Shown: positions 702-21,516 of the stretch, one piece after another | Numbering within the stretch: the first letter of the stretch is position 1 | How the letters are laid out: each line of letters begins with the position of its first letter | NCBI RefSeq assembly: GCF_963853765.1 | Contig: NC_088859.1 | Location: forward strand, 26,474,001 to 26,538,000 | Length of the DNA: 64,000 nt | Direction: 5' to 3' | Source: Magallana gigas | Taxonomy: Eukaryota | Made by a program: the position numbers and the translations under genes | Notes under the pieces: model-generated | Databases searched by the model: none | Told to the model about the DNA's origin: nothing | The model's input: only the letters and a program-made list of their open reading frames with translations

Positions 702-3006
702 ATGGACGCCGTGTCCAATTTACTTCGGAATTTCTATCTCGTTGTTTTCTTCTTGTTTGGTGTATTTAGGAGTACCTCTCTAGAATATGTGACAAAAACA
801 ACGAAATATGGGAGAGTGAGGGGGTCCGTGGAGAGTGTCCGCCCCGGGAAACAGATTGAGAGATTTCTGGGGGTTCCTTATGCGTCCCCTCCAATAAAGT
901 CTTTACGGTTTGAGGTGAGTAGCTTAGCTTTATTTTCAAAATATTTTTATGTGTGTGTGCATATTTTAAAATATATTTTATCTTTGAATAAAAACGTTGA
1001 ACGAAAAATTGTGACAACTTGCAATTTTCTCATTCTAAATTATTAAATTGATATCAGTTGTAGTTTTGAGATAGGTAGCCAGAAGAAAATGACAAAGCTG
1101 TCATTTACATCATGATTTCCGTGGGGTCGAATTGTTCATATATCATTTTTTGTTTTTCACACTGTCTTAATAGAAAAATAACACTATAGCCGTGATAATA
1201 TGATGTTTGTTTATGATATGGCTTTAAATGTATTGATATGACCTACGTACATACGTACGCACATGCATTACATATATGATTACATAACCTTGAAATACCT
1301 GATCGTGACGAGTATATGAATCAAAGTAATTATATACATACAACGATAAAGGTTATGCGATAAACCATAAACATGTACGAAATTTAGAGAATACACAATA
1401 AAAAGTGACGTCTTTGGTTATGTATGAAATTTTTTTTGATTTACCTGCAATTCTGGGGGGGGGGGTTCTCTTTTTTTTGGAAACAAGTTGCATTTGATGT
1501 TTTTTAATGACGCTGAATAAAGCAGTTGAGCAAAAATGCATTTTATTTTGTCAATATTTTAATTGGTCAAACAGTATAGTTCATTCAAACATTTTTTTTT
1601 GTCTTGAAAAATTTCTTTCGTAGGAGACACCTTTTAGATCTTTTGAAACTGATAGAATCAATATAGTAGGTGCATTCTACAATCTTATAAAACTGTAACT
1701 ACAGAATGTACAGTCGATCCATCAAATATATTCAAATAGTAATTTAAAACTTTGCCAACCACATCAAATTTTTGTCCATCGGCATTAATTTGAAATTGAA
1801 TATGCCAATTTTTTTCTTAAAAAATTTGCATGTACTGAGCTCTCGAGTCCATCAGATTTATTCAACTTCGGATTTTGTCAATGTTAAACTTTACGACCGA
1901 TTTTTTTGTCCAAATATTTTTTTTACCATGGCGTTGCAATAAAAAAAAAACATTCATAAAATAGTTCTCCCATGCATGCAGTTAGAAAAACTTTCTCATC
2001 ATTATTACGTATATGTGTATATAACTGGATGGTATTGTATGACGTTTTAAGTAAGCCTATCAAATTAATAATAATAATTGATGAAGTATTAAATTTTACG
2101 TCCAAATTATTTATCAAAGATACATGTATCTTGATTCTTGAACTTTAATCTGGTAAAAAATTAATACACAGTTTTTGTACATCTGTTTTCACTGAGGATA
2201 TTTGTATCGGCAGTTTGGTAATGTAAATCGAAAGATCGTGAGTCTTTCGAATCGGCACTGAATCGGTCAAAGCGACTTTTATATAATACATCCTTTAACA
2301 GGACAGCCAACAATCCTGTTATATCAATCGTTACTACTATTTAAAGCTACTTTTTTCTGGCAAAGAAGGAAATGGCCTATATTTCTAAGCGACATCGATA
2401 AGTTCAAGGTTTCTACTAGTAAAGAAACTTGTGTTGGCACTTGTCATTTCATCAATAATATGTCGCCAACGATTTTTTTTCTCAAAACATCTAAAAACAA
2501 TGCGTTGTGGTTTTCATTTCAGCCTTCAAACTACATTTATTGCGAAATAACGCACCGGTTTTTTTTCTTTGAAAAAAAAAGGGACTCAGTTTTCAAATAT
2601 ATACAAATTTAAAACGTATTACTATTGAAGCTGTACTTGGATCAAAACAATTAAAGAAACGAACTCCTTATACATTAGGGTAAGGAGTAAAATGGTGCAA
2701 TTAAGCTGGAAGGAAATCCATTATAAACATCTCATTTGTTTCCAATGAAAAAGCTTGCCAATTAGGCCACAAACCTCCTTTGTTATTTAATGTCTTACAT
2801 AAGTGCACTTGAAATCAACAAGATATATAAATTCTGATGAGAGAGAAAAATTAATGAAATATTTGATTCTATCTTGAGAATTTGCTTGATAACCTACAAT
2901 TTTGGTTCGTTCTCATGTTTAGGATTTCACTACCCAGAAACAAAGAAAATATCAAAACATGGAGGAAAAATGGGTGATAAATTTAAATTGATATATTATG
3001 AGATAT

Positions 3007-3064
<58 letters not shown>

Positions 3065-6000
3065 CTTTAGCTAGTCTTGAGAGCCAATCTTTCGATTGTC
3101 GTGAAATAATTGGCGTTCATCAGCTCACTACATTAACCAAGAAAAAGAGGCATTAAATTCTCAATAACAATTTATTCCTCACTTCGTTAGTGCTCTGCGG
3201 AATTATATATACCGGCGCGTGAAAAATTGAACAAGAATATTTATCATTATCCCAGAAATGGACACTTAGGAGTTCGTTAATTTCAATCAAGGCTACGGCT
3301 GTTGTCAATATAAAGAACAGGACTGCAATTATTTCGCTTGATATACAGCGCTTCAAGCTCTTTAGGGCTCTGTGGTCTCCTCCTACTTTGATTTTTGCTA
3401 TTTTTAAAGACAGTTTATAAGAAAGGTCTTCATAACCTTTTATTTGTTTGGTATTAAGAAAATGAAATTTATTAAGTTTTAAACGTAATTCATTGAAAAT
3501 TCACTAATTATTTTCAAAAGTTCATACTGAGTCAAAGTTTTGAAACCATAAACTACCACTCATNNNNNNNNNNNNNNNNNNNNNNNNNNNNNNNNNNNNN
3601 NNNNNNNNNNNNNNNNNNNNNNNNNNNNNNNNNNNNNNNNNNNNNNNNNNNNNNNNNNNNNNNNNNNNNNNNNNNNNNNNNNNNNNNNNNNNNNNTCCAT
3701 CGCTCACGCTACATCGCACTCATCTTGTAAAAGTCAAATGGCGCGGGGGAGGGAAAAAAGATTTATTCCAAAGTACATTCCTAGCGGAATTAATGAAAGC
3801 TAATAGATATAACCGATCAGCAATCTTAATTACCGGCATCCCAAGTGCAACGATATTCAAACGAGAAAGAGGGGGGGGGAATATCCTGATTGCTCGATGA
3901 AAGTAATCTCATTCCTGCGAACAATTTATACGGTATTGGCCAACACCGAATGAGTTTGTTTATCTTAACATAACCCGACCTTACTTGCACATTTTTTTTT
4001 GTAAATATTTCACTTTGATGTTTATATTTTCTCTCCTTTCTCAGATAACTTTCATCCATCATTGTCAGAGGTTTTTTGTGTTCAGAGGAAGATGATATTA
4101 AAAAAAAAACCTGTAAACCGAAAGAGTTTCATTGTCAACATACATGTATATGATTTTTTTTTCTTTTGGCAGAACATTTGATCGAACTTTTAAAGCTCGA
4201 AGAAGATATTTTATTTTCGGTGTTTACACATTGTTTCTAAAAGTTCATGTTATCTTGAATTTACGATATATTTTTGAAGAAGAAAAAAAAGATATGAAAA
4301 ATTAGCACACAATTGCTTTGGTAATTATTAAAAATGATGACATTTTAGGAATCTATTTTTACCGCGTAATTTATATCAGATATTCAAATTATAACCGACC
4401 TTGGTACTTTATGTATATACAATGCGGAAAATGGTTTCTGATAAGGTATTTGTCCTCCACCAAATCTTTGATCAGTGTGCTTAATGATATATTCTTTTTA
4501 AAAAATAATATAGTCCACATAGTGATATCATAGTTGATAGTTCTATGCTATTGCAATGATCGTTTTTTTTTTGGGGGGGGGTTTGGGGGGGGGGTCACAG
4601 ATTTGATATTAATATCGAAATTATTCATTTTAAGATCGATCGAATTTTAAGTGTAAATAGTCCGTAGAATGATAAACAATAAACATGACACACATTATAG
4701 TATCGACTCATTAAGGTGATTTAATACTAAAGAACCTCTAGAATATAAAAAATCTGTATGAAATCCGAACTTGATATTGACATTTACATTTTGATGATAA
4801 AAAAAATCATTTTTATGGTTTTTTTCCATCGCGTGACGTTGTATATGACACGAAATTTATTTATAGTGCAATAGCTACCCAGTTTATGGGAATATAAACT
4901 GGATTGGAGCAGTTTACGCTGCTACGCCTTTTTTTTTTAAATTCAACTGTTCCAGCCCAGTCTATATGAATATAAATTTGGTAGCCATTGAGTTCATTTC
5001 TAATGATTTAATTTTTTTACAATCATTAAATCACATCAAATTGTACAAAATTCAAACGTTGGCAAATTGTATCGTAGGCAACATTCTTTATATGGTATTA
5101 ACTAATATTTCCAGCCAATCAGAAAGCACGTTACAAACAACATTAAATTAATCAATAATAAATAGGGAAATTTCACCAAGGCATAAATCGTATAAACTTT
5201 TGCTTGAAAATACCAAACCAACCTATTTAGTACGACTAAGTTTAATAAATTCAGAGGCTTATATCTGTCAAAGCGAATGAGTGAAGTATATATGAGCTAT
5301 TTAAATTTACTTACTTTTCTTTTTTCAACTTATATGCAAAGTTTTATTTGGTTTCTGATATGTAGAAATTTTGAAATACATTAAATTTTAGATAATTCAG
5401 TCATGATTTTTGTTTGTCGTCGGACGTTTTCGTGTTTTTATGAAAATTTTGAATATGGGACATGTATTTATTTCCGGGGAAATACAATATTTTATTCATC
5501 TTATGTTTGGGAATACCAAGCATCATTTATTATAAGAGAATCATAGCAATTGGGTATATTAGCCTAGTAACTATATATCTAGAGTTTGTCGACTGACATA
5601 AATACTTCTTATTGGATAACGTCAGCAAAACGTGACGTCATCAACCTATAAGCAACGTAGAAAGCAGATCAATAATCCAGCCAAACTATGAAAACAGTTT
5701 GTAGCAATTTGCAGAGTGTACAATTATACATAGATAAATGATATGTAACATCTTTAACAGTTCAATTTATTGTTTTTTTCTCTACAGCGTCCTGTACCCC
5801 CCGATCCCTGGAATGGAGTATTGGACACCCTGGATATTCCACCAGCTTGTCCCCAGCCCGGAGAGGGCGTGGCTTATATTGAGTTTCATGTGCCAGGGTT
5901 CAATTACACGAGCGAAGACTGCCTTTATCTAAATATATATACACCAAAAGTAAGTATTCTTTATCAAACGATTTTCTCGCTTCAACGTGACATCAGTCAG

Positions 6001-8943
6001 TGGAACTTTAGAATAATTTTTTTTTTTATACTTTTCGTATCTATGTACAGATATAAATCCGTATAATTAAAAAAAACGCTGATGTCGACGTGCATTTGAT
6101 TTCCTCTTTCAAAGTTAATTTCTTAATAATGAGAAAAATATCAAATTCTGAGGGGTCTTCATATATATGTTGTAAGACAAGTAAATACGTAACAGTGTCA
6201 AAGATGCGAGTTTCCTCCTTTATTAAACCAAAATTGAAAGTCTAGGCTTTTCTGTAACAAAACTGTTACTTTAATATGTCATATCTATAGAATTTTAAAT
6301 CTCACAAGCAAATATGTATTATGAATTATGCCATAATCCTAACTAATTTTATCAAGAGTTTGAGAAATTGTCATCATCGGGGAAAAAGAAAACACAAGGA
6401 ACATGTACATGTATATTTTATTGTATCATAGAAGGACGTTTTCAAGCAGACACCTCTCAGGACACACACATTTATTAATGTAGTACTTCGCGGTTAACTG
6501 TCCCAACCAATTTTATATTCGTATAAATTGGGTAGCTATTGAATTCATTCCTTATAGAGAGCTCTAATTTGATTTTTTGCACAGGCACCTGACGTTAGGT
6601 GCCTGTGATTTTTTTGTGCGTCAATTTGTCCCAGCCCTTTTCAAATGTTTTGACTGTAACAGATGAAATTGACGAGTTATTTCCAATCTTGCCAGTTCTT
6701 GCCACGGTCTTAACTGATTTTATCAATTTTTTCGTAAGGTTTATGATTCATATATTTTTTAATTGTGAGATTAATTGTGCTGTTAGACAGTGATTTAAAT
6801 TAATTATGCACCATTTTTTTCATGTAAATTTAATTCAGCGGTTGTGTGGCCAACTTACAGATGATAGCCAGCAATAATTTGCTTTCAACGCAAAATTTTT
6901 CATTTTTAATGTATGTTGAAAAAATGAGTAAATCCTATGAAGTTTGCACATTTTAAATCTTACAATACCTTGTACATGAGAGAAAGAGTTTTAACAACAT
7001 CAATTTATTTGCAAATATCAAGTATCTTCTTTCTGATTTTATACTGTATTTTCATGTGTTTCAATTAAGCAAAAGTTCTAAAATTCCGAGAAAAAAAAAT
7101 TCAATAATGCCAGCAAATCAAAAAATAAAAATAATAATTTTAAGATCTGTCCTATTCTAATTAATATGAAGTTTAAAGTTATTAAATTACTCTTCAAACT
7201 TCAGTTTAAAAACCTAAGGACATGGCTTTAATCCATAACCTTGTGCTAAACCTAGCTAGATTCTACTGTCCTTAAGGAACAAGTATATTTTATTTGGAGG
7301 GGAGGGGGGACATCATAAAGTTGTAGGCGGGACAGTACTTCCAATTTGATAAATTAGAACTCTAAAAAGGAAGGTATTTCTGGTTTTCAGAAACGCAGCT
7401 GTATAAGATTTAAATGAGACCAGTATTTAAAATGGTTATTTAAAATCCATTTAATCGAACCGTACGTGCAGGCTCTTTCAAACCGAATTTAAAACGATGC
7501 ATTTGGTTAATTTTGCGATACACCGTCTTTCATAATGAACAAAAGAGCCTTCGCAAATTACACTTGCTTGACTTGCACATTAAATATGTTCAGGTACACG
7601 TTTCTCTGTAATATAAATGGTAACATCTGATACTTAAATTACAGACCAGCATGCATCTCTTGCAGATGTAGGTTTAAAGCTAATTAACCAAATTGTTGTA
7701 GTCCACCTAGCGTATTGCTTGGTGAAATTCAACACATCTAAGACCTGCACTTATATGGTAAAAAGTTTATTATTTTCTAATATCAAGGAAATATCTTACA
7801 AATTGCTGTGCTGTTGCAAAAGTTAATACCTATTAAAATTGCAAGCAAAATATCGTTCATTTGTTATCGAATATTTTTTTCCTGATATGGTCTCATTAAT
7901 ATTTTATTATAATTGGTTCGCAATATAGGCAGTTGACATCTATAACATTAAAGACTAATTCATTCAATATGTTTGATTGTATGTTGTATGGATATACATG
8001 TATATATATATTTTTTACATGTAATAGAGAAAAAACGTCTCGTCTGGGGTTGCGTATCACTTTAAATTTTCGGGTATACATTTCATCATCAGGTAAACAA
8101 ACAAACAAACAAACAAACAAACCCAATCATTTTAGGTCCTTTTTTATTTTGAGATATGAAAATATACAAAATATCTATGAATCAAAAGTAAATGATTATC
8201 GTGTTTAGCAATATATTACATGTTCATAGATCATCCCAGCGCTAAAAAATTGCTGCTTTACTGTTATTTGCAATTTGTTCTGAACGTCTGTGCAAAATAC
8301 CAATTTGTTCGCTTTCCACCTTGAACTTAAATTGATTAATTTTTACTCAAACAAAACTTCAAGTACAGTAATTATTAACATCTCTCTGTCCCATTTCCTC
8401 TGTAACCTTGTTAATTGATTCTCTTCTCTCAAAACTGTAAAAACAAAAACAAAAAAAAAGGAACATTGTCTTCATTTGAACTTTGACTGGGCTCATTCAT
8501 TCGTATTTCGTTCAAAGGCTGTTGCCATGAAAAAAGAAGATAATAAGCTGTTTGGAAAAATCATACATTACCTACATTTCATTTCCGTTACATCATATTC
8601 TGGAAAAGAGTACAGAAGTGTGCGTGTCTTTGATTCCTAATTGTTCACTGGTTGTGGGAGTAAATGGTTTTGTTTGCCTTCTTCTTTGAAGCCAATATAA
8701 CGAGGATACAGTTCCTGATCACTGGGTGGTAATATGAAAACCGTAAAACTTGGCCATTCCTTGATACCCAAATTTACAGATTTGTTCATCTGTCACCTTC
8801 ATTGATTGTGTTGTTGATGCACATGCAATTCAAACGGTACACTTTGGACTCTACTTCAATGACAAAATGGATTATCAGCTTAAGCTGGTAAAATCAGTCA
8901 ACCTGTTAACGTTAATCTGTTGCATTTTTTAGACACAGAACAT

Positions 8944-8994
<51 letters not shown>

Positions 8995-11900
8995 AGGAAT
9001 AAACACTTCTAAGCTATTTACACACAGTATAAAATGACATTCTAAAAATTCGAAATGAGTAACTTCTTTGTACATTTTTAGGGTATTATATAATCTTGGA
9101 GATTATCATTTTGGTGAGATGCAAAGTGTCTCCTAGTGATAAAAGCCGTGTTGTATTCTTTTGTAAATAAACATCTGTATACGGTTTCGGCCCCGAAGCT
9201 CACGGGTTGGTCTATCGATACGCCAGCAATTACCACAAGCTCGAATCCTCAAAGCAAAATAAATATATCACGATCTTTGAAGAAAAACACTCGAGGACTC
9301 TCTTCGATCTATTAAGAGGGTCCTCTTTGACCCCGAAGATGACAATCAAAAGATACGGATAAAAGGCGAGGGATACCGATTGTTGTAACACAGCGATCAG
9401 GTGTCACCGTCCCCATCAGTAAGTGGTTCGTCTTTTGTTGGATATAAACAATAATGTAAGAATCATGAGATAAGAAAACGGGATTAATGTCTGTTGAATT
9501 TGGCTCGGTTTTCATCGTCACATGTGTGGAAAATATTCGGATGTCATTTCGATCCGATGACTACCGAAACATTAGACGACGGACGGAAATGAAGAGGGGC
9601 TGTTAGCGGTGCATTTATATACCACTTAACAACTGGTCGAGACACATAACTGTCTCTGCTGAATAATGATTTTTTTCAGTTTGACAACAAGTACTCGTAG
9701 TACGTTGCACTCGTGCATATCAAGATCTTTTGACACCTTTTTCTACAATATCGCTTTGCTTCGTACGTCCCTCTTATTATCCTCACTTTGCTTTTCATTT
9801 ATGATATAAAGTGTGGTTTATAAACCTCTGCACTCATTTGGTTAAACAAATTAAGCAACGTCAAATAGTACTTTGAATATATAAAGAGTTCAAAGTCTTT
9901 GTGATTAATTTGATGCTTTCGAAATTTATTCGAAAATGCTCTGCTAGTTTTATATAGTTATATACCGTAAGTAATCTTACAGAAATTATCTTTCAAAAAC
10001 ATTTTCACTACTTTGATTTTTTTTTTTTTGCTTCTTAATTTTGCGAGTGGTCATCTTAAGGTAGTACACAAAAAACAAGCCAACAATTTCCTATCATTCA
10101 ATTTTTTGAAACTTTAATATTTCGATCAATCTATCTTTTTCCTATCAATTTTTTCTATCAATTTCCTATCATTCAATTTTCTGAAACTTTAATATTTCGA
10201 TCGATCTATCTTTGAAATGAAAGCTATAAATATTTAAAGCAGGAAAGAAATCTGACCTTGTATTTTTGCCTTCATTGCTTCAAACCTACTATTATTTCAA
10301 TTTCATTAATCGAAATAGTCATTTTTTGAACTTGCATTGCCAAAAAGCTACTTTTAAAGATATAACAAATGTTCTACTGCTATCTATAAAGCATTTTGTT
10401 ACTTAGATATTCTGAATTTTATTCTAGCAGTAACTAAAAGTAAATTCTGATAGATGACGTAATAGTGCTTATAAATTAATTTTTAAGACAAAAATTTGCA
10501 ACACTAAAACACTGCATTATTCAAATTCAGATAAAACTAAACGGCACAATTACTATAACCCCTGTACTTAGATTTATCAATATAACGAAATTAACTTAAA
10601 CGCTAATTTTAGATTAAATTTAAAAATAAAAATGAAAATCGAAGATGACGTCATTATATTTTGTTAATGTGCATTAAGTTTTATCACTAGTGATAATCAT
10701 GTCTAAATTTCAGGTTTTTACTAAAATAAACACAAGTTACACATTCTTGAATTATATATAAGGCTTGATTGCTAACAGACTAAAGGAACACCATAATGAG
10801 TGAAATGTAGATTAAGAAATGATCAAAATACGCGTCACTTCAATTTTTTATGCCTTGCGTAAGTTGAATCCAAGGTTGAAGTTTTTCAAATAAAGGTTTT
10901 GCAATGAACTTTTACAAAGATTTATACCAATACTTTGTTTGAGAAAATACAACAACAAAACTAATTTCACGGGTGTTTCGTAAACCTTAACGTCCTGCAT
11001 TTTACAAAGGAACTTACGATTTACGACCAAAATACTGAATACTTTTAAATCACATATTAATCAATTTTTCAATTCTAGGGTTTTAAAATATAATTATAGA
11101 TTTCAAAATAGCTGTAAATTGCTGGTTTTTAATAAATTTCATTCATTAAAGATAATTCCATGGTGTTGAAATATTAACGACGTAGTCGTAAGTTCTCTTG
11201 TAAAACGCAACCCGGGTCTGAACCAAAGTGGATAAAATAGTTTCTTTTTTAACATTTAAGTATATCGTGTTGTATACTTGTACTTTATTTTTTCAAGGTT
11301 TTTTTTTCATTGAGACTTTGATGTCAATATGTGCGGATAAAGTGCTTCAAATGTAGAACTCTGGGAGGGAAGGGAGGAATAACCTCATTTCGTAGGCTAA
11401 GTTTTTTTTTTCTGTGTCAAAATGAAGTTTAAAACATAAGACTTAAACCCGCAAATTAACCTGCTATAAATCAGCGAACAAATTTTTAAAAATTATATTA
11501 GGGGTAAAACATACTGACACAATGCAAGCGTCGTCTATTTCTTTTTCCATTCTAGATACTTTTTTTAGATCTTCGTTAATCATGTTACAAAAACATAAGA
11601 CTTAAACCCGCAAATTAACCTGTTATAAATCGGCGAACAAATTTTTAAAAATTATATTAGGGGTAAAACATACTGACACAATGCAAGCGTCGTCTATTTC
11701 TTTTTCCATTTTAGATACTTTTTTTTAGATCTTCGTTAATCATGTTACTAAAAAATATGTCAATTCAAAAAATCGATAAACTTTTAACGATGTTCAGCCT
11801 TAAACTGATGATAATAAATGTGTGAAATACTCTATAGTAGTCCATATGTAATAATGTAATGTGTAATGTAATGTGTTATGTAATGTGTAATGTATTGTGT

Positions 11901-12443
11901 AATGTAATGTGTAATGTAATGTAAAATGTAATGTGAAATACTTGTAGCCCCTATGTTTATAGCATAGCAATTCGGTTGTTATAAGTACAACGTTTCACTT
12001 AACAATTACGTCAGCTCATCCCATAACGTTCCTTATACTCAAAAGTTACACATTGTTCTAACATCCCCAGTTTTATTTGGCGTTTCATCACTTGACAAAT
12101 GCAATCAAAATCATCAAGTACGGTGACAAACTTTGTTACAAAAAGTGAGTGACAAAAGTGAGTATAACAAATAAAAAAAAATCTGTAAAAAAAGATATCT
12201 CCGGCGACACCATCCCTCAATTGAAATCCCATTTGTAATTAACTGAGGAAAACAGAAAGATTCATGGGTGCGTCATTTCCCATCATACAATAAAATTACC
12301 GTCATTTAAATATTTTGTAACGACCAACGTAGCTTTACTACGTCGCCATGTATTCGCACCTGTAAAAAAAGTTACGGACTATGATGACATCATTTCCGGG
12401 GTTTTCAAACAGCAATTTCATGCAATGTTTGTGGCAAATGATC

Positions 12444-12493
<50 letters not shown>

Positions 12494-15400
12494 TTTAAAC
12501 GATATATATATATATAGGAATTTAACTTTTTTGTTATCACAAATGGTATTTGATGCCTTTGATGAAATGTTTATAATTTAGTGTTTATCAGATATTACAT
12601 ACATTTTCTTTAATTAAAAAGAAATCTTTTCATTTCGGAATACCACACATTAATTTTGTTTCTAAACCATTCGTAAGATAACTTATCTGCAACATAGAGG
12701 CAGAGACGCTCTTGTTTAATGTTCACATCAAGAAAAAAACTGTTTATTTGACATTTCCTTGCATTAACCTGTCGGGTAATGTTTCCAATCTCAATTTGCT
12801 CTGCGTATTCCATCGGCACGGGTCTACAGAAATTACAGTGCATGCACGTTTACTTAAAACGACCATTTGTCAAAATATTGCCAACCATTACAGAAATTGC
12901 AAAGTGCATGTTGTACTTTTAATTCAATCGTATATTGTTAATTCAAGACATTAATCAACAAATCGATTAATTCATAAAATAAAAACGCACTACATGATAT
13001 TTTTCTTCGCTGCTAAATTTAAGCATTGGCTTCTTTAAGAGTACCAACGGTGGTAAGAAGTATCCCGTTCTGTTTTTTGTCCATGGTGGATCATACTTTA
13101 ACGGGATGGGAGCCATGTTTGAAGGGAGCATGCTGTCGGCTTCCGGAATCGTGGTTGTAACCATAAACTACAGACTAGGACCACTCGGTGAGTTACACTT
13201 AATACATGCTTTGTACATTTCACTATCGACGAGACTAGGTTAAACATTTTTCATTTGAAACATTAATTAAAAACTATTTCACAAAGTTAATGACGAATGT
13301 CTCTGTTTCATAGGTTTTTTGGTGTCCGGTGACCCGGAACTCTCAGGGAATTATGGGATGATGGATATGGTTGCTGCTCTGTGGTGGGTGCGCCGGAATA
13401 TCGAGTTCTTTAACGGGGACCCAAACCAAGTAACACTGATGGGTCACAGCGCAGGAGGCTGTAGTGTCGGCTTTCTTGTTATGTCACCTTTGACAAAAGG
13501 TAGTCTTCAGACTATTGTTCTTGTTGTGTGATTTCCGGTTGACAAAATTGACTCGATATACGTCAGTGGTTTTCCTGCTTTGTTTAACTTGTTCTGGATG
13601 TGATCGTTGCTATTTCTGCTGCTGTTGTTGTTGTTGCTACTGTTGTTGCTGCTGCTGCTTTTTATTGNNNNNNNNNNNNNNNNNNNNNNNNNNNNNNNNN
13701 NNNNNNNNNNNNNNNNNNNNNNNNNNNNNNNNNNNNNNNNNNNNNNNNNNNNNNNNNNNNNNNNNNNNNNNNNNNNNNNNNNNNNNNNNNNNNNNNNNNN
13801 NNNNNNNNNNNNNNNNNNNNNNNNNNNNNNNNNNNNNNNNNNNNNNNNNNNNNNNNNNNNNNNNNNNNNNNNNNNNNNNNNNNNNNNNNNNNNNNNNNNN
13901 NNNNNNNNNNNNNNNNNNNNNNNNNNNNNNNNNNTAGATGTTGTTGAAGGACCATCGTGGTTGTTGAGATGGTTGCAACAACTGAGTTCTTGTTGATTTT
14001 TGTTTTAGAATTATTATTTGCCCATCTATCGATGATAAGTGTCTACGACATGTACAGTTAAAAAATACCGCCAATTAATATTTTTTGTTCGGAAATTGTT
14101 TTCTGCTATTTTGCGTATTTGTTAAAAGTGTGTTTGATATTCGATATATGAGCACGATCTTCTAAATGCCCGATTCGCGTGCTTTGTGACCTTTTTAATG
14201 ATAAGTGTATTTAATTACATGCCGCCAGAAGGCGGTCGGTTATATGATATGAAAGTAAAAATTAGTTGTGCGTGTCTGCGGTACTATTGTGAGTCTGGTG
14301 CAACCATAGACTTTATCTACGCAACGCAGCTTTGCTTAGAGAGAGCGTGTGATTGAACCAATCTTAAAATTGTTATTCTAAAAAATATTTTAAAAATAAA
14401 ATATTATATGTTTTACGGTTTAGCCGTGGGGGCAAGAGCAGCAGGAGTTACATATATGTACACTATATTCACTTATCAAATGTGTATTTCGTCAAACAAA
14501 ACAAACTTCAAGTACAATAATTTTGCTTTTAATTGTTTTTTTTTAGTACCATCAAATAAGTGACAATTATATACAATGTATCATTAAATTAAGAAAAATT
14601 GGACATATCCTAAATTATTTTCAAGTCAAATTCGATGCACCCCATCCACTCCCGGTTATCGAGGAAGTTCGCCGCCCCGATACAAAGTACCTTCCGACGC
14701 CGCTGTATAAGCAAAAGTGTTCTATTTGTTAGATTTTACTGTTAAATTTATTCTTATTTTTCCTGATTTTTTAAAATCGTTTTTGCAAAACTGTAGTTGT
14801 AGAATCTAGGATCCCTTCATATTCAATACACGTTTAATACAATATGCATGTGCACATATATGTTGATTTGCGCTTTGTCCATTTGTCTGTGAGTTGATTT
14901 TTAATGTAATGCACAAACTCGAATTTCAAATATTTCTTGTTCAGAAAAACAAATGGTTTGCTAACGTTCTCTCGACGCTTATTTTTTTTTTATTATTATA
15001 AGATCACCTGCAAAGTTTATACTTTTAAAAATCTATAATCAGATAAAAGGGATTAAACTCATTTTATTTATACATCGGGAGTAGATCATTTTGTTCAAAG
15101 TACAATGACCCATCTGATAACATTTCCGACATACACGAAAATCCCTTTTAAGTAGGCGTTTAAACAAGGAGAAAAAACTGTCAAAATTAAATATCATACA
15201 ATAAACAACTAATATTAAATAAGATATGATGAAAAACTAGGCTAATCTAATTCAACGGGAAATTCAATCACTTTTCAATTACTTGAATGACTGCTTCTGC
15301 GATTGATAAAATACGTCATATCTTTAAATGAAATAGAAGTAGGCGATAAAAACATTCAATCTAATGAGTACAGGCAATTTTCGCGTGCTGCGCTCAGCAA

Positions 15401-18400
15401 TTCCGAAAACTGTTGAAGCCGAATTCGATGTGTCATGGTCGTTGTTATCGGCCTTTTTGTGTGTAAATAACGGTATCTCCTGATGTTTTTAAGACCTCTG
15501 CCATTTTGATTACTGTCATAATATAAAAGTCTGTAACATGTTTCCTGTCAGAAATAGGTGATATTTTAGTGTTAATAGGTGAGCACTTTGAATATGGATG
15601 AAACTGAATACCGGGAAATCTGCTTGGTACATGTATAATAGATGTCTTCTTCAAGGGCACAGATAAACGGCGTTTTTATTTATATAAATATTATAAAAAA
15701 GTTTCAAAGCTAATATAATCAAACGAAGGTTATTTTCGATGCAGAGAAAGATAAAACTGGTTAAGATTGCATTTTGTTCGAATTTTGATAAAACGTTAAC
15801 ATAGTATTCAAAGAATTTCAAACAATAATTTTATGTAAGGATTCTCTGGTTTCAATGCTAAATGAATTTTTTTTAAAATTATATATTTTATGAATAACTT
15901 ACAAGACATATAATAAGTAGATTACAAGACATATAATAAGTAGATATAATATATTACGAATTATTGCCAACAATTGCCAAAACGTGGCATAAATTGATAC
16001 AGATTTCGACATTCTCGGGAGATTAAATTTCATCAAAGGTTAGCGAGTTCGCATCACCTACACAGTATTACAGAGAACTGATGCTTCAGTTTATCAAAAT
16101 GCTACTGCAGAGATTTTTAATTTTTAATGCAACGATAGTGAAAAACGTTCTGGGTTATCTCGACACTACCTTTGTATAGATATAAAGAGATATCCAGTTA
16201 ATGCAATGATAATCCAGAGTAGATTTGGTGATAAAGATTCCATTTGATTGGGTGTTGTGAAGTCGGCTAATTCATGTTATATATATTCTTTCTCACTGCA
16301 GATGTTGTTTATCAAATCGATGCAGCTTTTTTTTTATGGATTTAGGCTGTTAATACTTTAAGAAGTTGTACATTGAATTTCCAGCAATTCTGCGATCATA
16401 GTTTGATTGCGCAAGAAGGGGCTTCAATTTTGAGATCATTTAGAATTATTTAGAGATGAAATATAAAATAAAAAAAAGATATGAAATATTTTGCTCAGAT
16501 GTTTTTCTCAGAAGGCAGTTTAATGTAAGAAATGTCTCAAGCTGCAAAACCTTTGAATATGTCGATTATTGAAAATGAAGCAATATGAATGTATCATTGT
16601 TTAAATTTGGCACTAATTGTGCAAGGAAAAAATAAGAATAGGCACACCTTATGTTATACATATGTTGCAGGGTTGTTCCGGAGAGTCATAATCCAGAGCG
16701 GGTCCCCCCTTGCACAATGGAGTTACTCGGATAAAGTGACTTCTCCGGACATCCACTTCAAGATCTTTGTCTCTTCCATTGGGTGTCTTCGGAACAGCTC
16801 TAGACTCATCAAAGAATGTCTGCAGAACATACCTACCGAAGTCATGCATAGACAAATTGCGTTTAAATATGTGGTAGGTCGCACAGATATAAATATATAT
16901 TCTTAGACGAGTATTTAAAAAAATATTCTTGTGGCAATTGATGTTGAGCATATTTCCGTTCTGATGAAAATTTCTACAAGATTTGTTTACATACAACCAT
17001 AAATAAACGTTAATGTCGAGTCTTGAGATCAAACATTTTTCCTCTTCGAAAATTCTTAGGCAAACTTATCCTCTAAGCATAACTCATAGGAATTACAGCG
17101 TTTTTCCATATTTAACCCCCCCCCCCTCCCGAGAAATTCATAGCAGACAGAGGTGTTACATGTACATCGCCGGAAATAAACGGCCAATCAATGCCAGACT
17201 GTGTGTTTCGAACGATGACATCATATTTTCTGTAAATCAAATGGCAAGCAATGCAGCAGACTTGTTTTTGAACGATTTGACATTTTGTTAACATATATTT
17301 TTTCTACCACACGCAAAGAATGTCAATATTTATCAAGGTCATAAACAAAACATATACATAATGAGAATCATCCCTTTCTTCCTCAAATGAGATTTTTCTG
17401 AAATGATAGTTATTTTCTAAATCATAAACATGAATTATAATTTAGGAAAAATAGTTTCATTAGATTTTGTCAAGAGCAATCATTCGACAAAAATCGACTT
17501 AAAACTGAAAAAAAAAATACAAAGTAATAATTGCTATTTTGGAATCCAAGTAAGAGTTGTCTCTCTTATACAAAAGATCGATGAACCTTAAAGAGATGTA
17601 TAAAATGTCTCCTTCCTTGTCAATTTCAGACGTCTCCGTCCCTGACGCCGCAGTTCCGCCCGGTGGTGGACGGGTACGTACTTCCGGATACACCGGAGAG
17701 ATTGATACAATCCGGGGCATTCCGAGCGGAGAGCGTGATGACTGGCGCCACGTCAGACGAGGGGCTTATTGCAGGTAGTCAGCTTACAATATCAAGGATT
17801 CATTGTTTAGTTTATCGTAAGTTTTCCATTATTTGCGTTTGCAGTGGGAGGGGGACTCCCTAACAGTCTGATATAAATGTAATGCATATTTTCCAGCAAA
17901 ACCACTGGTGGAATTATTTGGTGGAGAGGAAAAAGGCATCAAACAGTTAATAACACTGATGTATTGTTTCCGCGGAGATTTGCCAAACCTGGCCAATATC
18001 GTGGGTACGCAAAATTTGTTTGGTTTTTTTTTTCAGTTGAAAAGTATTGGTCGTTATTTATGCATCGGATTTAATCCAAGGTTCGACCACAAAACTGAAA
18101 CAAAGTAACTTTTTGATTGAAAGTTTTCTTTCCTCAATGAATTTCTTCGACTGATATATAAAACAAACTAGACTTTCTCTATCAATAAGAGCACGTGAGT
18201 CATTCATATCCTATCACTTTTAAAAATTGTAATATTTGCTCTACTTTTAGACATGGTGATCGATACCTATGCATCACTGCCACTTGAGGAAAAAGAGCAT
18301 TTGGTGGAGGAAATCTTCTCTGACGTAAGCCTGTTTAATTATTCGGAAGTACCAAAGCAGTGTACTGCTTTGGAATCATTTTTATCATGCATCCAGTGAC

Positions 18401-20996
18401 ATTAGCGGTATTCAAAACTGGGAGATCAGTAACACATATCAAAAGTTGAAATAACTCGGATGAGTTTTTGAAAAAAAGACTTAAAAATTAGAAAAAAAAT
18501 CTATATTTACGTCTTATTCAATCTCATGATCAAGCTATCCCAATTTAGATAATCGGTTTTAAAACAAATGAAAAGAAATTCTACAGACATTTTCGATACG
18601 TACACTTAACCGTTAATGACGTCATCGTTTCAGATTGTTGGTGACTACTACATCACAGCGCCCACACATAAACTGGCCCAGATGATGTCATCACGCAGTG
18701 TTCCAGTCTACCTCTATAACTATGAGTACCAGTCCAAATACGCCCAGTGGGAAGGTATACTAGTAGTGATATGCATAATTACTAGAGATTCTCATCATCA
18801 GTTGTATAAATCATTGATATTTATCGTGATTTTGTCAATTTAAACAATAAAATGCTCTCTTTGATGATTCATGCGGGATATGAAGGTGGCAATATTGCAG
18901 AAAAAATAAAAACCCGCGTTAGCGGGTTATGTAAATTTTTGTTCTGCAATGATCGCTACTTTTATAACCCGCGTGAATTTAATTATCAAAGAAAGCATTA
19001 TGTTGTTTATTTTTACATCTTTCTTTTAACAAATTAATAATTTCATTGTAAAAAGTAAGTAAAATTCACTAAATTACTGTAAATGTATATACATCAGTAC
19101 GTTAGCTAAAAGAAACAGCCAAATCGTCTCTCATTGGAATTTAATTCTGGTATCATCATGATTATTTCGTGAAGTCCGTGATTTTTCTTAGGTCGCTGTT
19201 GGTTTCGACCAATCGATAAATGGGGCGTGTAGATTTCAGTCCTGTCAGTTTTTACAACTGTTCTATAGAGCTATGAATTAACTTTAAGTTCCGTAAGAAA
19301 TAGAGGGAATCATACTCGGTAAATGTAAATATGTATTTATCATAACTTCCAGCTAGCGTTTATGTATAAAGATGCAACAGTTTTCAAAACTGTTTAAATA
19401 TAAAGCAACACATGTGCATTGCGATCTTTGAGTGTCCATATAAGGACTAAATATACTCAATGTTTGCGCTAGATATTGTATTAATTAGCAAATAGAATCC
19501 CTTGAACGTAAACAAAATTGTCTAGGTGTAAAGTGATAATTATCTCATACCAACATGCAATATTTTATTAAGAGCAAATTACAAATTCTAGGCTGGCCGC
19601 AACAGACGTTTTTAAAAGTAGAATTACCACGTGTGTAAGTCGACAAACCATTCACAATTATACACGCTCCAATTTACTTCCTTTTTCAGGAGTCACCCAC
19701 GGATCTGAAATCTTCTACCTCTCAGGATTCCCCATGTCCGGTCACTCAAATTTTAGATACGATGATACCGACAAGAAAATGGCCACATTGCTCATTCATA
19801 TGTGGGCAAACTTTGTGTATAATGGGTAAGAACAAACACAAACAAACAAACAAAAAAGAAATATCGTTTATCATGAAAAAAACCATAAAAAGTAAATTCA
19901 ATACGATATAGTACTCTGTGTTTGAAAGGCGGTATGACTAATGTTATCATACTCCTCGTCAGGTTGTATTTCATTTCCAGGATTAAGCTCAGAGATATTA
20001 AATATATCAATCCTGGTCCTTTTCTCTTCAGATATTTTTTTTTAATTTCCCGTGATGTGTGTATGTGTGGGCAGGGGGTCTCAAAAGTAATGTGATAGTA
20101 TTTATTTTTGCACTTCCCTTTTCTGTCTTTTGACAAGCAGCTTTATACCGTAATATTGGAATTTTTGGTACGCAACTAGCATAATCTCATCCTTTTATTG
20201 TAAGGGTGAAGCATTTCAAACACGGTTTAAATTTCAATTGCATCACTTAATCCTGAAACTACGCAAGAAGATGTTCGTATCCTTTTTAATAATATATTTA
20301 ATATTTTTAATATAAAGTGCGTAAAAGTTGTAAAATTGTAAAATGTGTGAAATAGAGTATTTTTATTATTCGTGTGAGAAAAAACAATTTATATTTTCTC
20401 CGTATTTGACCATCATACCACGCAGACAGCTGTCAGTGAATAACTTTATCAAATTTTTACCGGATTTTTGCATAAAGCCACCATTAGACTTTGTAAAGAA
20501 ATTGAGTAACACAGAATTCTCATTTGTTGCTAATCTTGTATTTATTTATTTGTTTATTTTGGGTTTTTTAAATTGCAGACTTCCATCATTGGTTCCTCAC
20601 AGACAATTCCATATGGATCGATACAGTGTTAACAATCCCGTATACACTAAAATCTATCAGGGAATAAACCGACCCTTTGTTGAACTGTCCACAAATTACA
20701 AAACTCGAAAACTGGACTTCTGGAACTACAAAATCCCAATGTATTCTGGGAAATTAGATTCTGGTGACGTCATACAAAGTCCAGTGCAAAGGACACACAC
20801 AGTGACCGGCCCCGATCATTGGGCATTAATCGCCACTTCTATTGGACTTGCGGGCCTCGCAATGTTTTTAGCGGTTGGATATTGTAAAACTAAAATTCAA
20901 CTACAAAATCTTCACCGCCAACATGGCGTTTGCATAGCCGGGGAAATCTCCAGTAAAGACATTAAGAAGTCCAAGTATTTCAAAACTAACGTTTGA
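702..20996 (+). CDS. Type-B carboxylesterase/cholinesterase-family, neuroligin-like type I membrane protein (~637 aa, 11 coding exons)
   Basis: Exons 702-914, 5788-5949, 13040-13187, 13314-13499, 16671-16873, 17630-17774, 17897-18004, 18251-18324, 18634-18754, 19690-19825, 20579-20996. All introns are GT-AG with consistent phases; total 1914 nt. Motifs: signal peptide, YGRVRG, FLGVPYASPP, SEDCLYLNIY, FVHGGSY, VTINYRLGPLGFL, NYGMMD, GDPNQVTLMGHSAGG, QSG, PVVDG, DEG, HGSE, WANF. C-terminal TM helix (WALIATSIGLAGLAMFLAVGYC) and tail ending KTNV. Confidence 0.9.
3011..3060. repeat. (CT)n microsatellite
   Basis: Directly visible. Confidence 0.95.
3564..3695. other. Assembly gap (132 N)
   Basis: Run of N. 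Confidence 1.
8947..8992. repeat. (CT)n microsatellite
   Basis: Directly visible. Confidence 0.95.
10084..10213 (+). repeat. Short direct duplication (~54 bp, period 75)
   Basis: CAATTTCCTATCATTCAATTTT..ATCTATCTTT at 10084 and 10159. Confidence 0.8.
11431..11748 (+). repeat. Tandem duplication, 2 x 159 bp
   Basis: The unit starting AAAACATAAGACTTAAACCCGC occurs at 11431 and 11590 with few substitutions. Confidence 0.9.
11832..11935 (+). repeat. (AATGT)n/(TAATGTAATGTG)n minisatellite
   Basis: Directly visible. Confidence 0.85.
12447..12490. repeat. (GA)n microsatellite
   Basis: Directly visible. Confidence 0.95.
13668..13934. other. Assembly gap (267 N) next to a (GTT/GCT)n tract
   Basis: Run of N preceded by a trinucleotide repeat at ~13615-13660. 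Confidence 1.
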
Positions 20997-21516
20997 GTGA
21001 CGTCAACTCCATAATGTTTGGAAACAACACACATGAAAATGATTCTGATCTTTATTATATTGATACACACGAATTTAACATCTATTTTCTGCATTCGCTT
21101 TTTAATAAAAGACAAAATCCAAAATTGCTGTGTTTTTATTGATTGTAGAATTATACAACGTGAAAGAAAATTAAATGACTTCTTCCCTAAAAATGTAAAA
21201 ATATCTTATAATTGAACTTTCAACAAATTTGTCTCATATTTCTCATATATCTGAAAATACACCAAAACACGAAACGATTGTTCAATGATGGTACGTGGTC
21301 TGGTGTTACTTGTTATTTCATCTTTTCACACATTACAGTAAGTCTTTAGATATTAAAAAAATATATATATTGACCAAATCGTGGGCGAAATTTTCACGGA
21401 TTTTTAGAGCAATGACAAATTATATATGTACTTTGTGTGAGAATGAAAAACCTTTTATCACGTACAGGATCAATTTCTCCACCATCAAAACGGTAAGAAA
21501 ATCTAGAAGCTATCAC

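Follow-up and report, generated by a model that had tools for sequence, protein, structure and literature searches.

The subject of this analysis is a single gene near the start of a 64,000-nucleotide stretch of the Magallana gigas genome (contig NC_088859.1), referred to below as the window. The gene occupies positions 702-20996 on the + strand and consists of 11 exons, with the start ATG at 702, the stop TGA at 20994-20996 and GT-AG borders at every intron; its product is 637 amino acids (aa) long. Exon and motif coordinates are collected in Table 1. The protein combines a cholinesterase-type domain (COesterase, PF00135), in which all three residues of a Ser-Glu-His catalytic triad are kept, with a single C-terminal transmembrane helix, and is probably an active, membrane-anchored type-B serine carboxylesterase. 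An earlier note, made from the DNA letters alone, had presented it as a neuroligin-like receptor with a PDZ-binding tail, perhaps a scaffold-anchored cell-surface esterase or an intermediate between active esterases and adhesion molecules.

Most of the exon structure can be followed directly in transcripts. The RNA alignment covered window positions 15001-21000, that is, exons 5-11, and used three runs (X2, X3 and X20); the runs behind the RNA contigs bear the same organism label as the genome. Exons 5-11 are joined within single contigs of 1707 nt (X2) and 3544 nt (X3), and raw poly-A reads from X20 contain identical joints, with mate 1 on the minus strand, as an mRNA from the + strand predicts. 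A close relative supplies a 2555-nt cDNA contig (L042), which encodes a 637-aa protein (P0044) with 94.8% identity to the window protein and aligns in exactly 11 blocks whose edges agree with the exon borders; the first block (149-914) makes the 5' untranslated region contiguous with exon 1 back to at least 149. The joint between exons 4 and 5 is crossed by this cDNA, and in the species of the window RNA pieces begin at 16669, fitting the terminal AG of exon 4, while the X3 contig extends 1340 nt upstream of exon 5. The gene is real and expressed, and the splice model of the earlier note is borne out by RNA for exons 5-11 and by the relative's cDNA for all 11.

A 10-exon, 601-aa model built from open reading frames (ORFs) alone was tried and rejected: just 24 aa spanned positions 319-386 of the COesterase profile, and the RNA added the 108-nt exon 7, whose joints in all three runs lead from 17771 to 17894 (cut +3) and from 18003 to 18250 (cut +1). 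Judging by its exon numbers, the earlier note had already counted this exon. The profile itself is matched in eight of the ten exon pieces scanned (exon 7 was not among the pieces), in collinear order and from position 6 to 470. Two runs of N in the assembly fall in introns 1 and 4, and the profile is unbroken over both, passing from 6-44 in exon 1 to 46-94 in exon 2 and from 147-207 in exon 4 to 209-265 in exon 5. Because the profile is continuous and the L042 cDNA spans both introns with nothing unaccounted for, the gaps hide no coding sequence.

In the proposed arrangement, a signal peptide would send the alpha/beta-hydrolase domain of ~535 aa to the extracellular or luminal side, a disordered stalk of ~20 aa and a single transmembrane helix would tether it, and a short cytoplasmic tail would come next. 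Catalysis would be carried out by Ser220 (GHSAG), Glu348 (DEG) and His457 (HGSE), with HGGSY as the oxyanion hole. The elements from which the earlier note had argued (HGGSY, GDYYITAP without the Cys, one transmembrane helix and a T-N-V end) are all present where it had placed them, and it was correct that the three catalytic residues are kept, with the Ser codon at 13448-13450, the Glu in DEG of exon 6 and the His in HGSE of exon 10. As sequence motifs, PF00135 membership, the contexts of the Ser-Glu-His triad and the oxyanion loop are all found. No more than two disulfide loops, C92-C116 and C275-C286, are present in the ectodomain, which also has two N-x-S/T sites.

A structure model was built with AlphaFold2 from a 50-sequence alignment, using the 95% identical P0044 as a proxy. 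The model has a mean predicted local distance difference test score (pLDDT) of 90.1 and a predicted TM-score (pTM) of 0.84, and it shows a complete cholinesterase fold, followed by a disordered stalk at 562-578 (pLDDT<50), a long helix at 579-614 and a disordered tail. In a Foldseek search of the PDB, neuroligins (E 2e-50, with TM-scores of 0.85-0.87 normalised to target length) and acetylcholinesterase (AChE; E 4e-49) were effectively tied; thus, the fold does not discriminate between the two. At the sequence level, exon 4 has matches in the PDB to bile-salt lipase, CES1, AChE and neuroligin.

The search for related proteins was seeded with P0007, which had been retrieved by querying proteins with the last exon, a query that otherwise gave mostly fragments. 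The closest full-length proteins are P0044 (95% identity), a Crassostrea virginica protein named ‘acetylcholinesterase-like’ (83%) and a protein of Saccostrea echinata (79%); more distant orthologues (42-58% identity) come from other bivalves, from gastropods, from a chiton and from cephalopods, and the orthologues carry PF00135. Across the 25 family members compared (Bivalvia, Gastropoda, Polyplacophora and Cephalopoda), GHSAG, DEG and HGxE do not vary and HGGS(Y/F) hardly does, and every full-length member has a C-terminal transmembrane helix. An abalone ‘AChE’ (PMC9189711) was considered as a further member and rejected, as it is an FGESAG enzyme with no transmembrane helix reported. The oyster genome (564 Mb in 29 contigs searched) contains the family at a single locus, and the window gene is the sole oyster orthologue of this mollusc-wide family. 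The automatic names of the orthologues conflict (AChE-like, cholinesterase 1-like, CES2e-like, CES4A-like, fatty acyl-CoA hydrolase-like, cocaine esterase and neuroligin-4 partial); since they vary by species, we regard them as arbitrary best-hit labels.

That the triad has not changed in any of four molluscan classes, even where identity to the window protein is as low as 42%, points to selection on catalysis. G-H-S-x-G elbows are present in active lipases, so the His that precedes the nucleophile need not prevent catalysis. From these observations we infer enzymatic activity and, from the hydropathy and the model, the membrane topology, and we judge an active membrane-anchored serine carboxylesterase to be the likely identity of the product. 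Several points weigh against this. A conserved triad is not proof of hydrolysis, and recombinant nematode CEST-9.2, with its triad intact, was inactive on the substrates tested (PMC12931606). The third cholinesterase disulfide is missing, there being no ectodomain Cys after residue 376, and the oxyanion loop is HGGS, as in the inactive neuroligins, rather than the commoner HGGG. Activity data for any family member were not found in the literature, and the protein may reside either at the cell surface or in an organelle.

Table 1. Exons, assembly gaps and protein motifs of the esterase gene, in window coordinates
Feature	Residues (aa)	Position	Strand	Content	Basis
Exon 1		702..914	+	start codon, signal peptide (aa 1-~25), onset of COesterase domain	ORF and GT donor; PF00135 profile 6-44, E 1e-9
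Exon 2		5788..5949	+	first disulfide (omega) loop C92...C116, short, without choline-binding Trp	AG/GT borders; Pfam profile 46-94; loop alignment; cDNA block 5786-5949
Exon 3		13040..13187	+	oxyanion-hole loop HGGSY	splice borders, Pfam, L042 cDNA
Exon 4		13314..13499	+	nucleophile elbow GHSAG	Pfam profile 147-207, E 2e-25; cDNA block 13313-13500
Exon 5		16671..16873	+	second disulfide loop C275-C286	Pfam profile 209-265; RNA joint 16872/3 to 17629/30 in X2, X3, X20
Exon 6		17630..17774	+	catalytic acid, SDEG	RNA joints
Exon 7		17897..18004	+	108 nt, 36 codons, CFRGDLP at 17965-17985	found from RNA only; cDNA block 17896-18004
Exon 8		18251..18324	+		RNA joints; L042 cDNA
Exon 9		18634..18754	+	GDYYITAP, without Cys of third cholinesterase disulfide	splice borders, RNA
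Exon 10		19690..19825	+	catalytic His in THGSE	Pfam, RNA
Exon 11		20579..20996	+	end of esterase domain, disordered stalk, transmembrane helix, 37-aa tail	RNA contigs over 20578-21000
N run		3564..3695	.	intron 1, noncoding	
N run		13668..13934	.	intron 4, noncoding	
HGGSY	140-144	13082-13096	+	oxyanion loop	
GHSAG	218-222	13442-13456	+	Ser220 = AGC, 13448-13450	
SDEG	346-349	17753-17764	+	exon 6, Glu348	
GDYYITAP	416-423	from 18640	+	Cys absent	
THGSE	456-460	19695-19709	+	exon 10, His457	
Transmembrane helix	~580-600	20820-20882	+		hydropathy maximum
KTNV C-terminus		20982-20993	+	ends 37-aa tail	

Esterases that combine a membrane anchor with an intact triad are already known. Nematode CESTs (for example, Caenorhabditis elegans CEST-9.2) have a signal peptide, a triad-bearing COesterase domain, an unstructured stalk of ~40 aa and a C-terminal transmembrane helix (PMC12931606). 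The architecture of the window protein matches this published description, the comparison having been made by description only; the CESTs differ in belonging to another phylum, in being predicted in lysosome-related organelles and as acyltransferases in ascaroside biosynthesis. Closer to hand are the GHSAG paralogues, which include Aplysia and Octopus proteins automatically named AChE and oyster loci on contig C7 at 21.59 and 49.76 Mb. They have a C-terminal transmembrane helix or terminal hydrophobic segment, they share the GHSAG elbow, the HGGS loop and the C-terminal anchor with the window protein, and they are its sister group in the tree described below. Nearly all members of the GHSAG superclade are C-terminally anchored. 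They differ in having only 32-36% identity to P0044, in having HGGSN instead of HGGSY and HGxD instead of HGxE, and in the absence of CFRGDLP. A literature search found nothing on this molluscan family, on molluscan esterases anchored by a transmembrane helix or on neuroligins that retain the Ser, and nothing relevant on the elbow residues of invertebrate neuroligins.

The CFRGDLP motif (aa 376-382, positions 17965-17985) is worth recording in its own right. It contains RGD and may have a structural role or be exposed as an integrin-type motif. Most orthologues of bivalve, caenogastropod, vetigastropod or chiton origin retain it; the corresponding residues are GFSVDLP in heterobranchs and CLCGHLP or CFRGFLP in cephalopods. 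A second observation concerns exon 4, which has 186 nt and phase 1 at both ends: a transcript that skipped it would stay in frame and encode a protein without the nucleophile. No isoform of this kind was seen in the RNA alignment, which covered exons 5-11.

The alternative that survives best concerns the tail. If KTNV bound a class I PDZ scaffold of the Dlg/PSD-95 type, the protein would be a scaffold-anchored synaptic or cell-surface esterase, with its active ectodomain placed at junctions; we consider this unlikely. The end of the protein, KYFKTNV, does match the C-terminal pattern [ST]-x-[VIL], and the predicted disorder of the tail would make it accessible. The last ~30 tail residues are near-identical among the window species, P0044 and Saccostrea, despite an identity of 79% over the whole proteins. 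The [ST]-x-[VIL] pattern is found at the C-terminus of 9 of the 25 family members, and V, I or L is the last residue in most. However, chance alone would give a three-residue pattern of this kind to a few percent of proteins, and KYFKTNV is restricted to oysters of the Magallana type and Saccostrea. The C. virginica orthologue has lost it through a 1-bp deletion that shifts the frame, and ends in ...NMHVNTAFV. Elsewhere the ends do not support class I binding as a family-wide property: Pinctada has ...SKYPRVNI; mussels and scallops have ...NRMI or ...NRII; RQxSxSSG(E/Q)xxL, at times extended, is common to most gastropods and heterodont bivalves, with SSGERML or SSGQPIL as the end in most gastropods; and cephalopods have ...HVN or ...HVT. 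Judged from these sequences, the tail is a possible PDZ ligand in oysters, but such a ligand does not characterise the family, and at least one oyster does without it. Thus, of the scaffold-anchored cell-surface esterase proposed in the earlier note, the membrane-anchored esterase is retained as the best reading and the class I pattern does fit, whereas conservation of the T-N-V end stops at the Magallana-type and Saccostrea oysters. In the C. virginica orthologue (L035:22980-23160; GCA_053477285.1, CM130320.1), the old tail is still legible, in diverged form, in the other frame (RQHC.CIAGEI...).

A second alternative is a non-enzymatic adhesion or receptor molecule, either a neuroligin relative that has retained the triad or an intermediate between esterases and neuroligins. 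The resemblances to neuroligins (vertebrate NLGN1-4 and the oyster genes described next) are real: a signal peptide, a cholinesterase-fold ectodomain, a stalk, one transmembrane helix and a short tail with a class I PDZ-type end are common to both, as are HGGSY, CPQ and xAP motifs, and neuroligins head the Foldseek list as the best structural matches. As evidence, the motifs that the earlier note had called neuroligin-type are less specific than they look, because HGGSY-like loops are found outside neuroligins too and AP instead of CP is common in the superfamily; likewise, AChE equals neuroligin in the fold search. Neuroligins have Gly at the nucleophile position (GSGAG in vertebrates, GHGHG in oyster), whereas the window protein keeps the Ser, in a triad invariant in four molluscan classes; its omega loop is much shorter; its tail has 37 aa compared with >100 aa; and its stalk, transmembrane helix and tail are dissimilar, BLASTP returning no match between them and NLGN4 up to E 10.

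The oyster genome also contains neuroligin-type genes proper. There are two, both on contig C8, a different chromosome from that of the window gene, at 33.10-33.11 Mb (+) and 33.13-33.16 Mb (-). Both have an FGHGHGA elbow (Ser replaced by Gly) and an HGESY oxyanion loop, and their transmembrane and juxtamembrane segment is 61% identical to that of chicken NLGN4; the triad His survives in one copy (SAVHGDE) and is replaced by Phe in the second (SGVFGDE). The two loci (L024-L026 and L038; 33098001-33114000 on the + strand and 33126001-33168000 on the - strand) are inverted with respect to each other and lie ~20-30 kb apart. When elbow exons are compared with chicken NLGN4, loci on C8, C2, C3, C9 and C5 have 45-59% identity and the window gene has 40%.

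Relationships were examined with a careful maximum-likelihood tree (50 rows, 582 columns, LG+C20), which was made without gliotactin, neurotactin, nematode CESTs or any invertebrate neuroligins other than those of the oyster; the rows from the oyster's own genome (its neuroligins and the C2, C3, C5 and C7 loci) are approximations stitched from tblastn matches, some with intron read-through. The molluscan family forms a clade with support of 100/100 inside a lophotrochozoan superclade, also 100/100, all of whose members have GHSAG. The oyster C8 genes and the vertebrate neuroligins form another clade (100/98), with the window gene outside it, and thus the sequence data exclude nesting of the family within the neuroligins. 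The backbone among the large clades is weak (63/51). The unconstrained tree keeps the GHSAG superclade and the neuroligins apart, and an approximately unbiased (AU) test does not reject them as a single clade (delta lnL 5.2, p=0.33); on these sequences, a sister relationship is neither supported nor rejected.

Taken against what characterises neuroligins, the window gene has the type-I single transmembrane helix but neither the loss of the Ser nor the placement in the clade, and we consider a non-enzymatic adhesion or receptor role quite improbable. What speaks for it, apart from the Foldseek ranking and the HGGSY and CPQ motifs, is that oyster neuroligin GHGHG has the same His before the nucleophile position and that the AU test leaves the joint clade unrejected. 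The earlier note's neuroligin-like receptor is not supported, given the separate GHGHG genes on C8, and its intermediate between esterases and adhesion molecules is likewise unsupported as it was put, the true neuroligins being separate and the free tree keeping the clades apart. Insect gliotactin, neurotactin and glutactin offer a further comparison, being membrane or matrix proteins that carry a cholinesterase-like domain (PMC5943944). They resemble the window protein in this general respect and differ in having no functional triad and, for neurotactin, in an N-terminal transmembrane segment.

A related evolutionary idea is that the GHSAG superclade is the closest active-enzyme sister of the neuroligins, that it would keep an ancestral anchored and active state (with the HGGS loop and the His before the nucleophile) and that the neuroligins would have arisen by loss of the Ser. 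This idea comes from the similarity of the oyster neuroligin GHGHG to GHSAG together with the AU result, and we give it a low probability.

The search of the oyster genome with chicken NLGN4 also returned tandem arrays made up of numerous intronless carboxylesterase genes with a GESAG elbow. These genes (~510-590 aa) are found on C7 at 12.89-12.91 and 15.32-15.34 Mb, on C5 at 51.37 and 6.10 Mb, on C10 at 18.53-18.62 Mb and on C9 at 3.73-3.75 Mb. Some have in-frame stops and are probably pseudogenes, and the arrays represent a large lineage expansion apart from the window gene. In addition, a multi-exon cholinesterase-like gene at C5:22723001-22743000 (L027+L039) has the elbow GQNTG, in which Ser is replaced by Asn, and keeps HGGGY and the His; it is a candidate non-catalytic member and groups loosely with cnidarian-type sequences in the tree.

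The weakest alternative is a membrane-bound molluscan cholinesterase that ends cholinergic signalling. The window protein has the same fold as AChE and butyrylcholinesterase (BChE), ~30% identity to them, the Ser-Glu-His triad and the first two disulfide loops. The automatic names of the orthologues, the AChE structures at E 4e-49 and the intact triad would favour such a role, but we hold it to be very doubtful, considering that the omega loop is ~9 residues shorter than that of the fish cholinesterase-like protein P0100 and lacks the Trp segment (...EIWNPN...), that the elbow is GHSAG and not FGESAG, that the Cys of the third disulfide is absent, that the names differ by species and that the family stands apart from the fish cholinesterase-like pair in the tree. 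The means of attachment differs as well: cholinesterases are anchored through glycosylphosphatidylinositol (GPI), PRiMA or ColQ (PMC12931606, PMC5943944), whereas the window protein has its own transmembrane helix. As the omega loop is short and without the choline-binding Trp, the sequence suggests that acetylcholine is probably not the substrate, and a canonical cholinesterase role appears unlikely.

Some features of the surrounding DNA can be noted. The window is AT-rich, with a GC content of ~31-35%, and an Rfam scan of positions 1-22000 gave no matches. Intron 9 contains a dispersed repeat of ~500 bp (18830-19340) with internal inverted symmetry, possibly of the miniature inverted-repeat transposable element (MITE) type. 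At first look it has >4900 candidate copies in the genome, and among the 40 that were scored the full-length matches are ~79-85% identical. In the RNA runs this repeat has very high depth on both strands and odd internal joints, which come from other copies and not from the window gene. Repeats of the CT/GA dinucleotide type at 2990-3060 (intron 1) and 12440-12480 (intron 2) translate as SL and ER runs.

For the biology of the oyster and its relatives, a tempting misreading is cleared: what looks like a neuroligin with an active site is one of a mollusc-wide set of membrane-tethered serine esterases. The family is conserved, single-copy in the oyster, expressed and uncharacterised, and so is a reasonable target for activity-based profiling. 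This is of some practical relevance in that bivalve esterase and cholinesterase activity is used as a pollution biomarker. If the GHSAG superclade were indeed the sister of the neuroligins, it would offer a testable account of the evolution of an anchored enzyme into a synaptic adhesion molecule.

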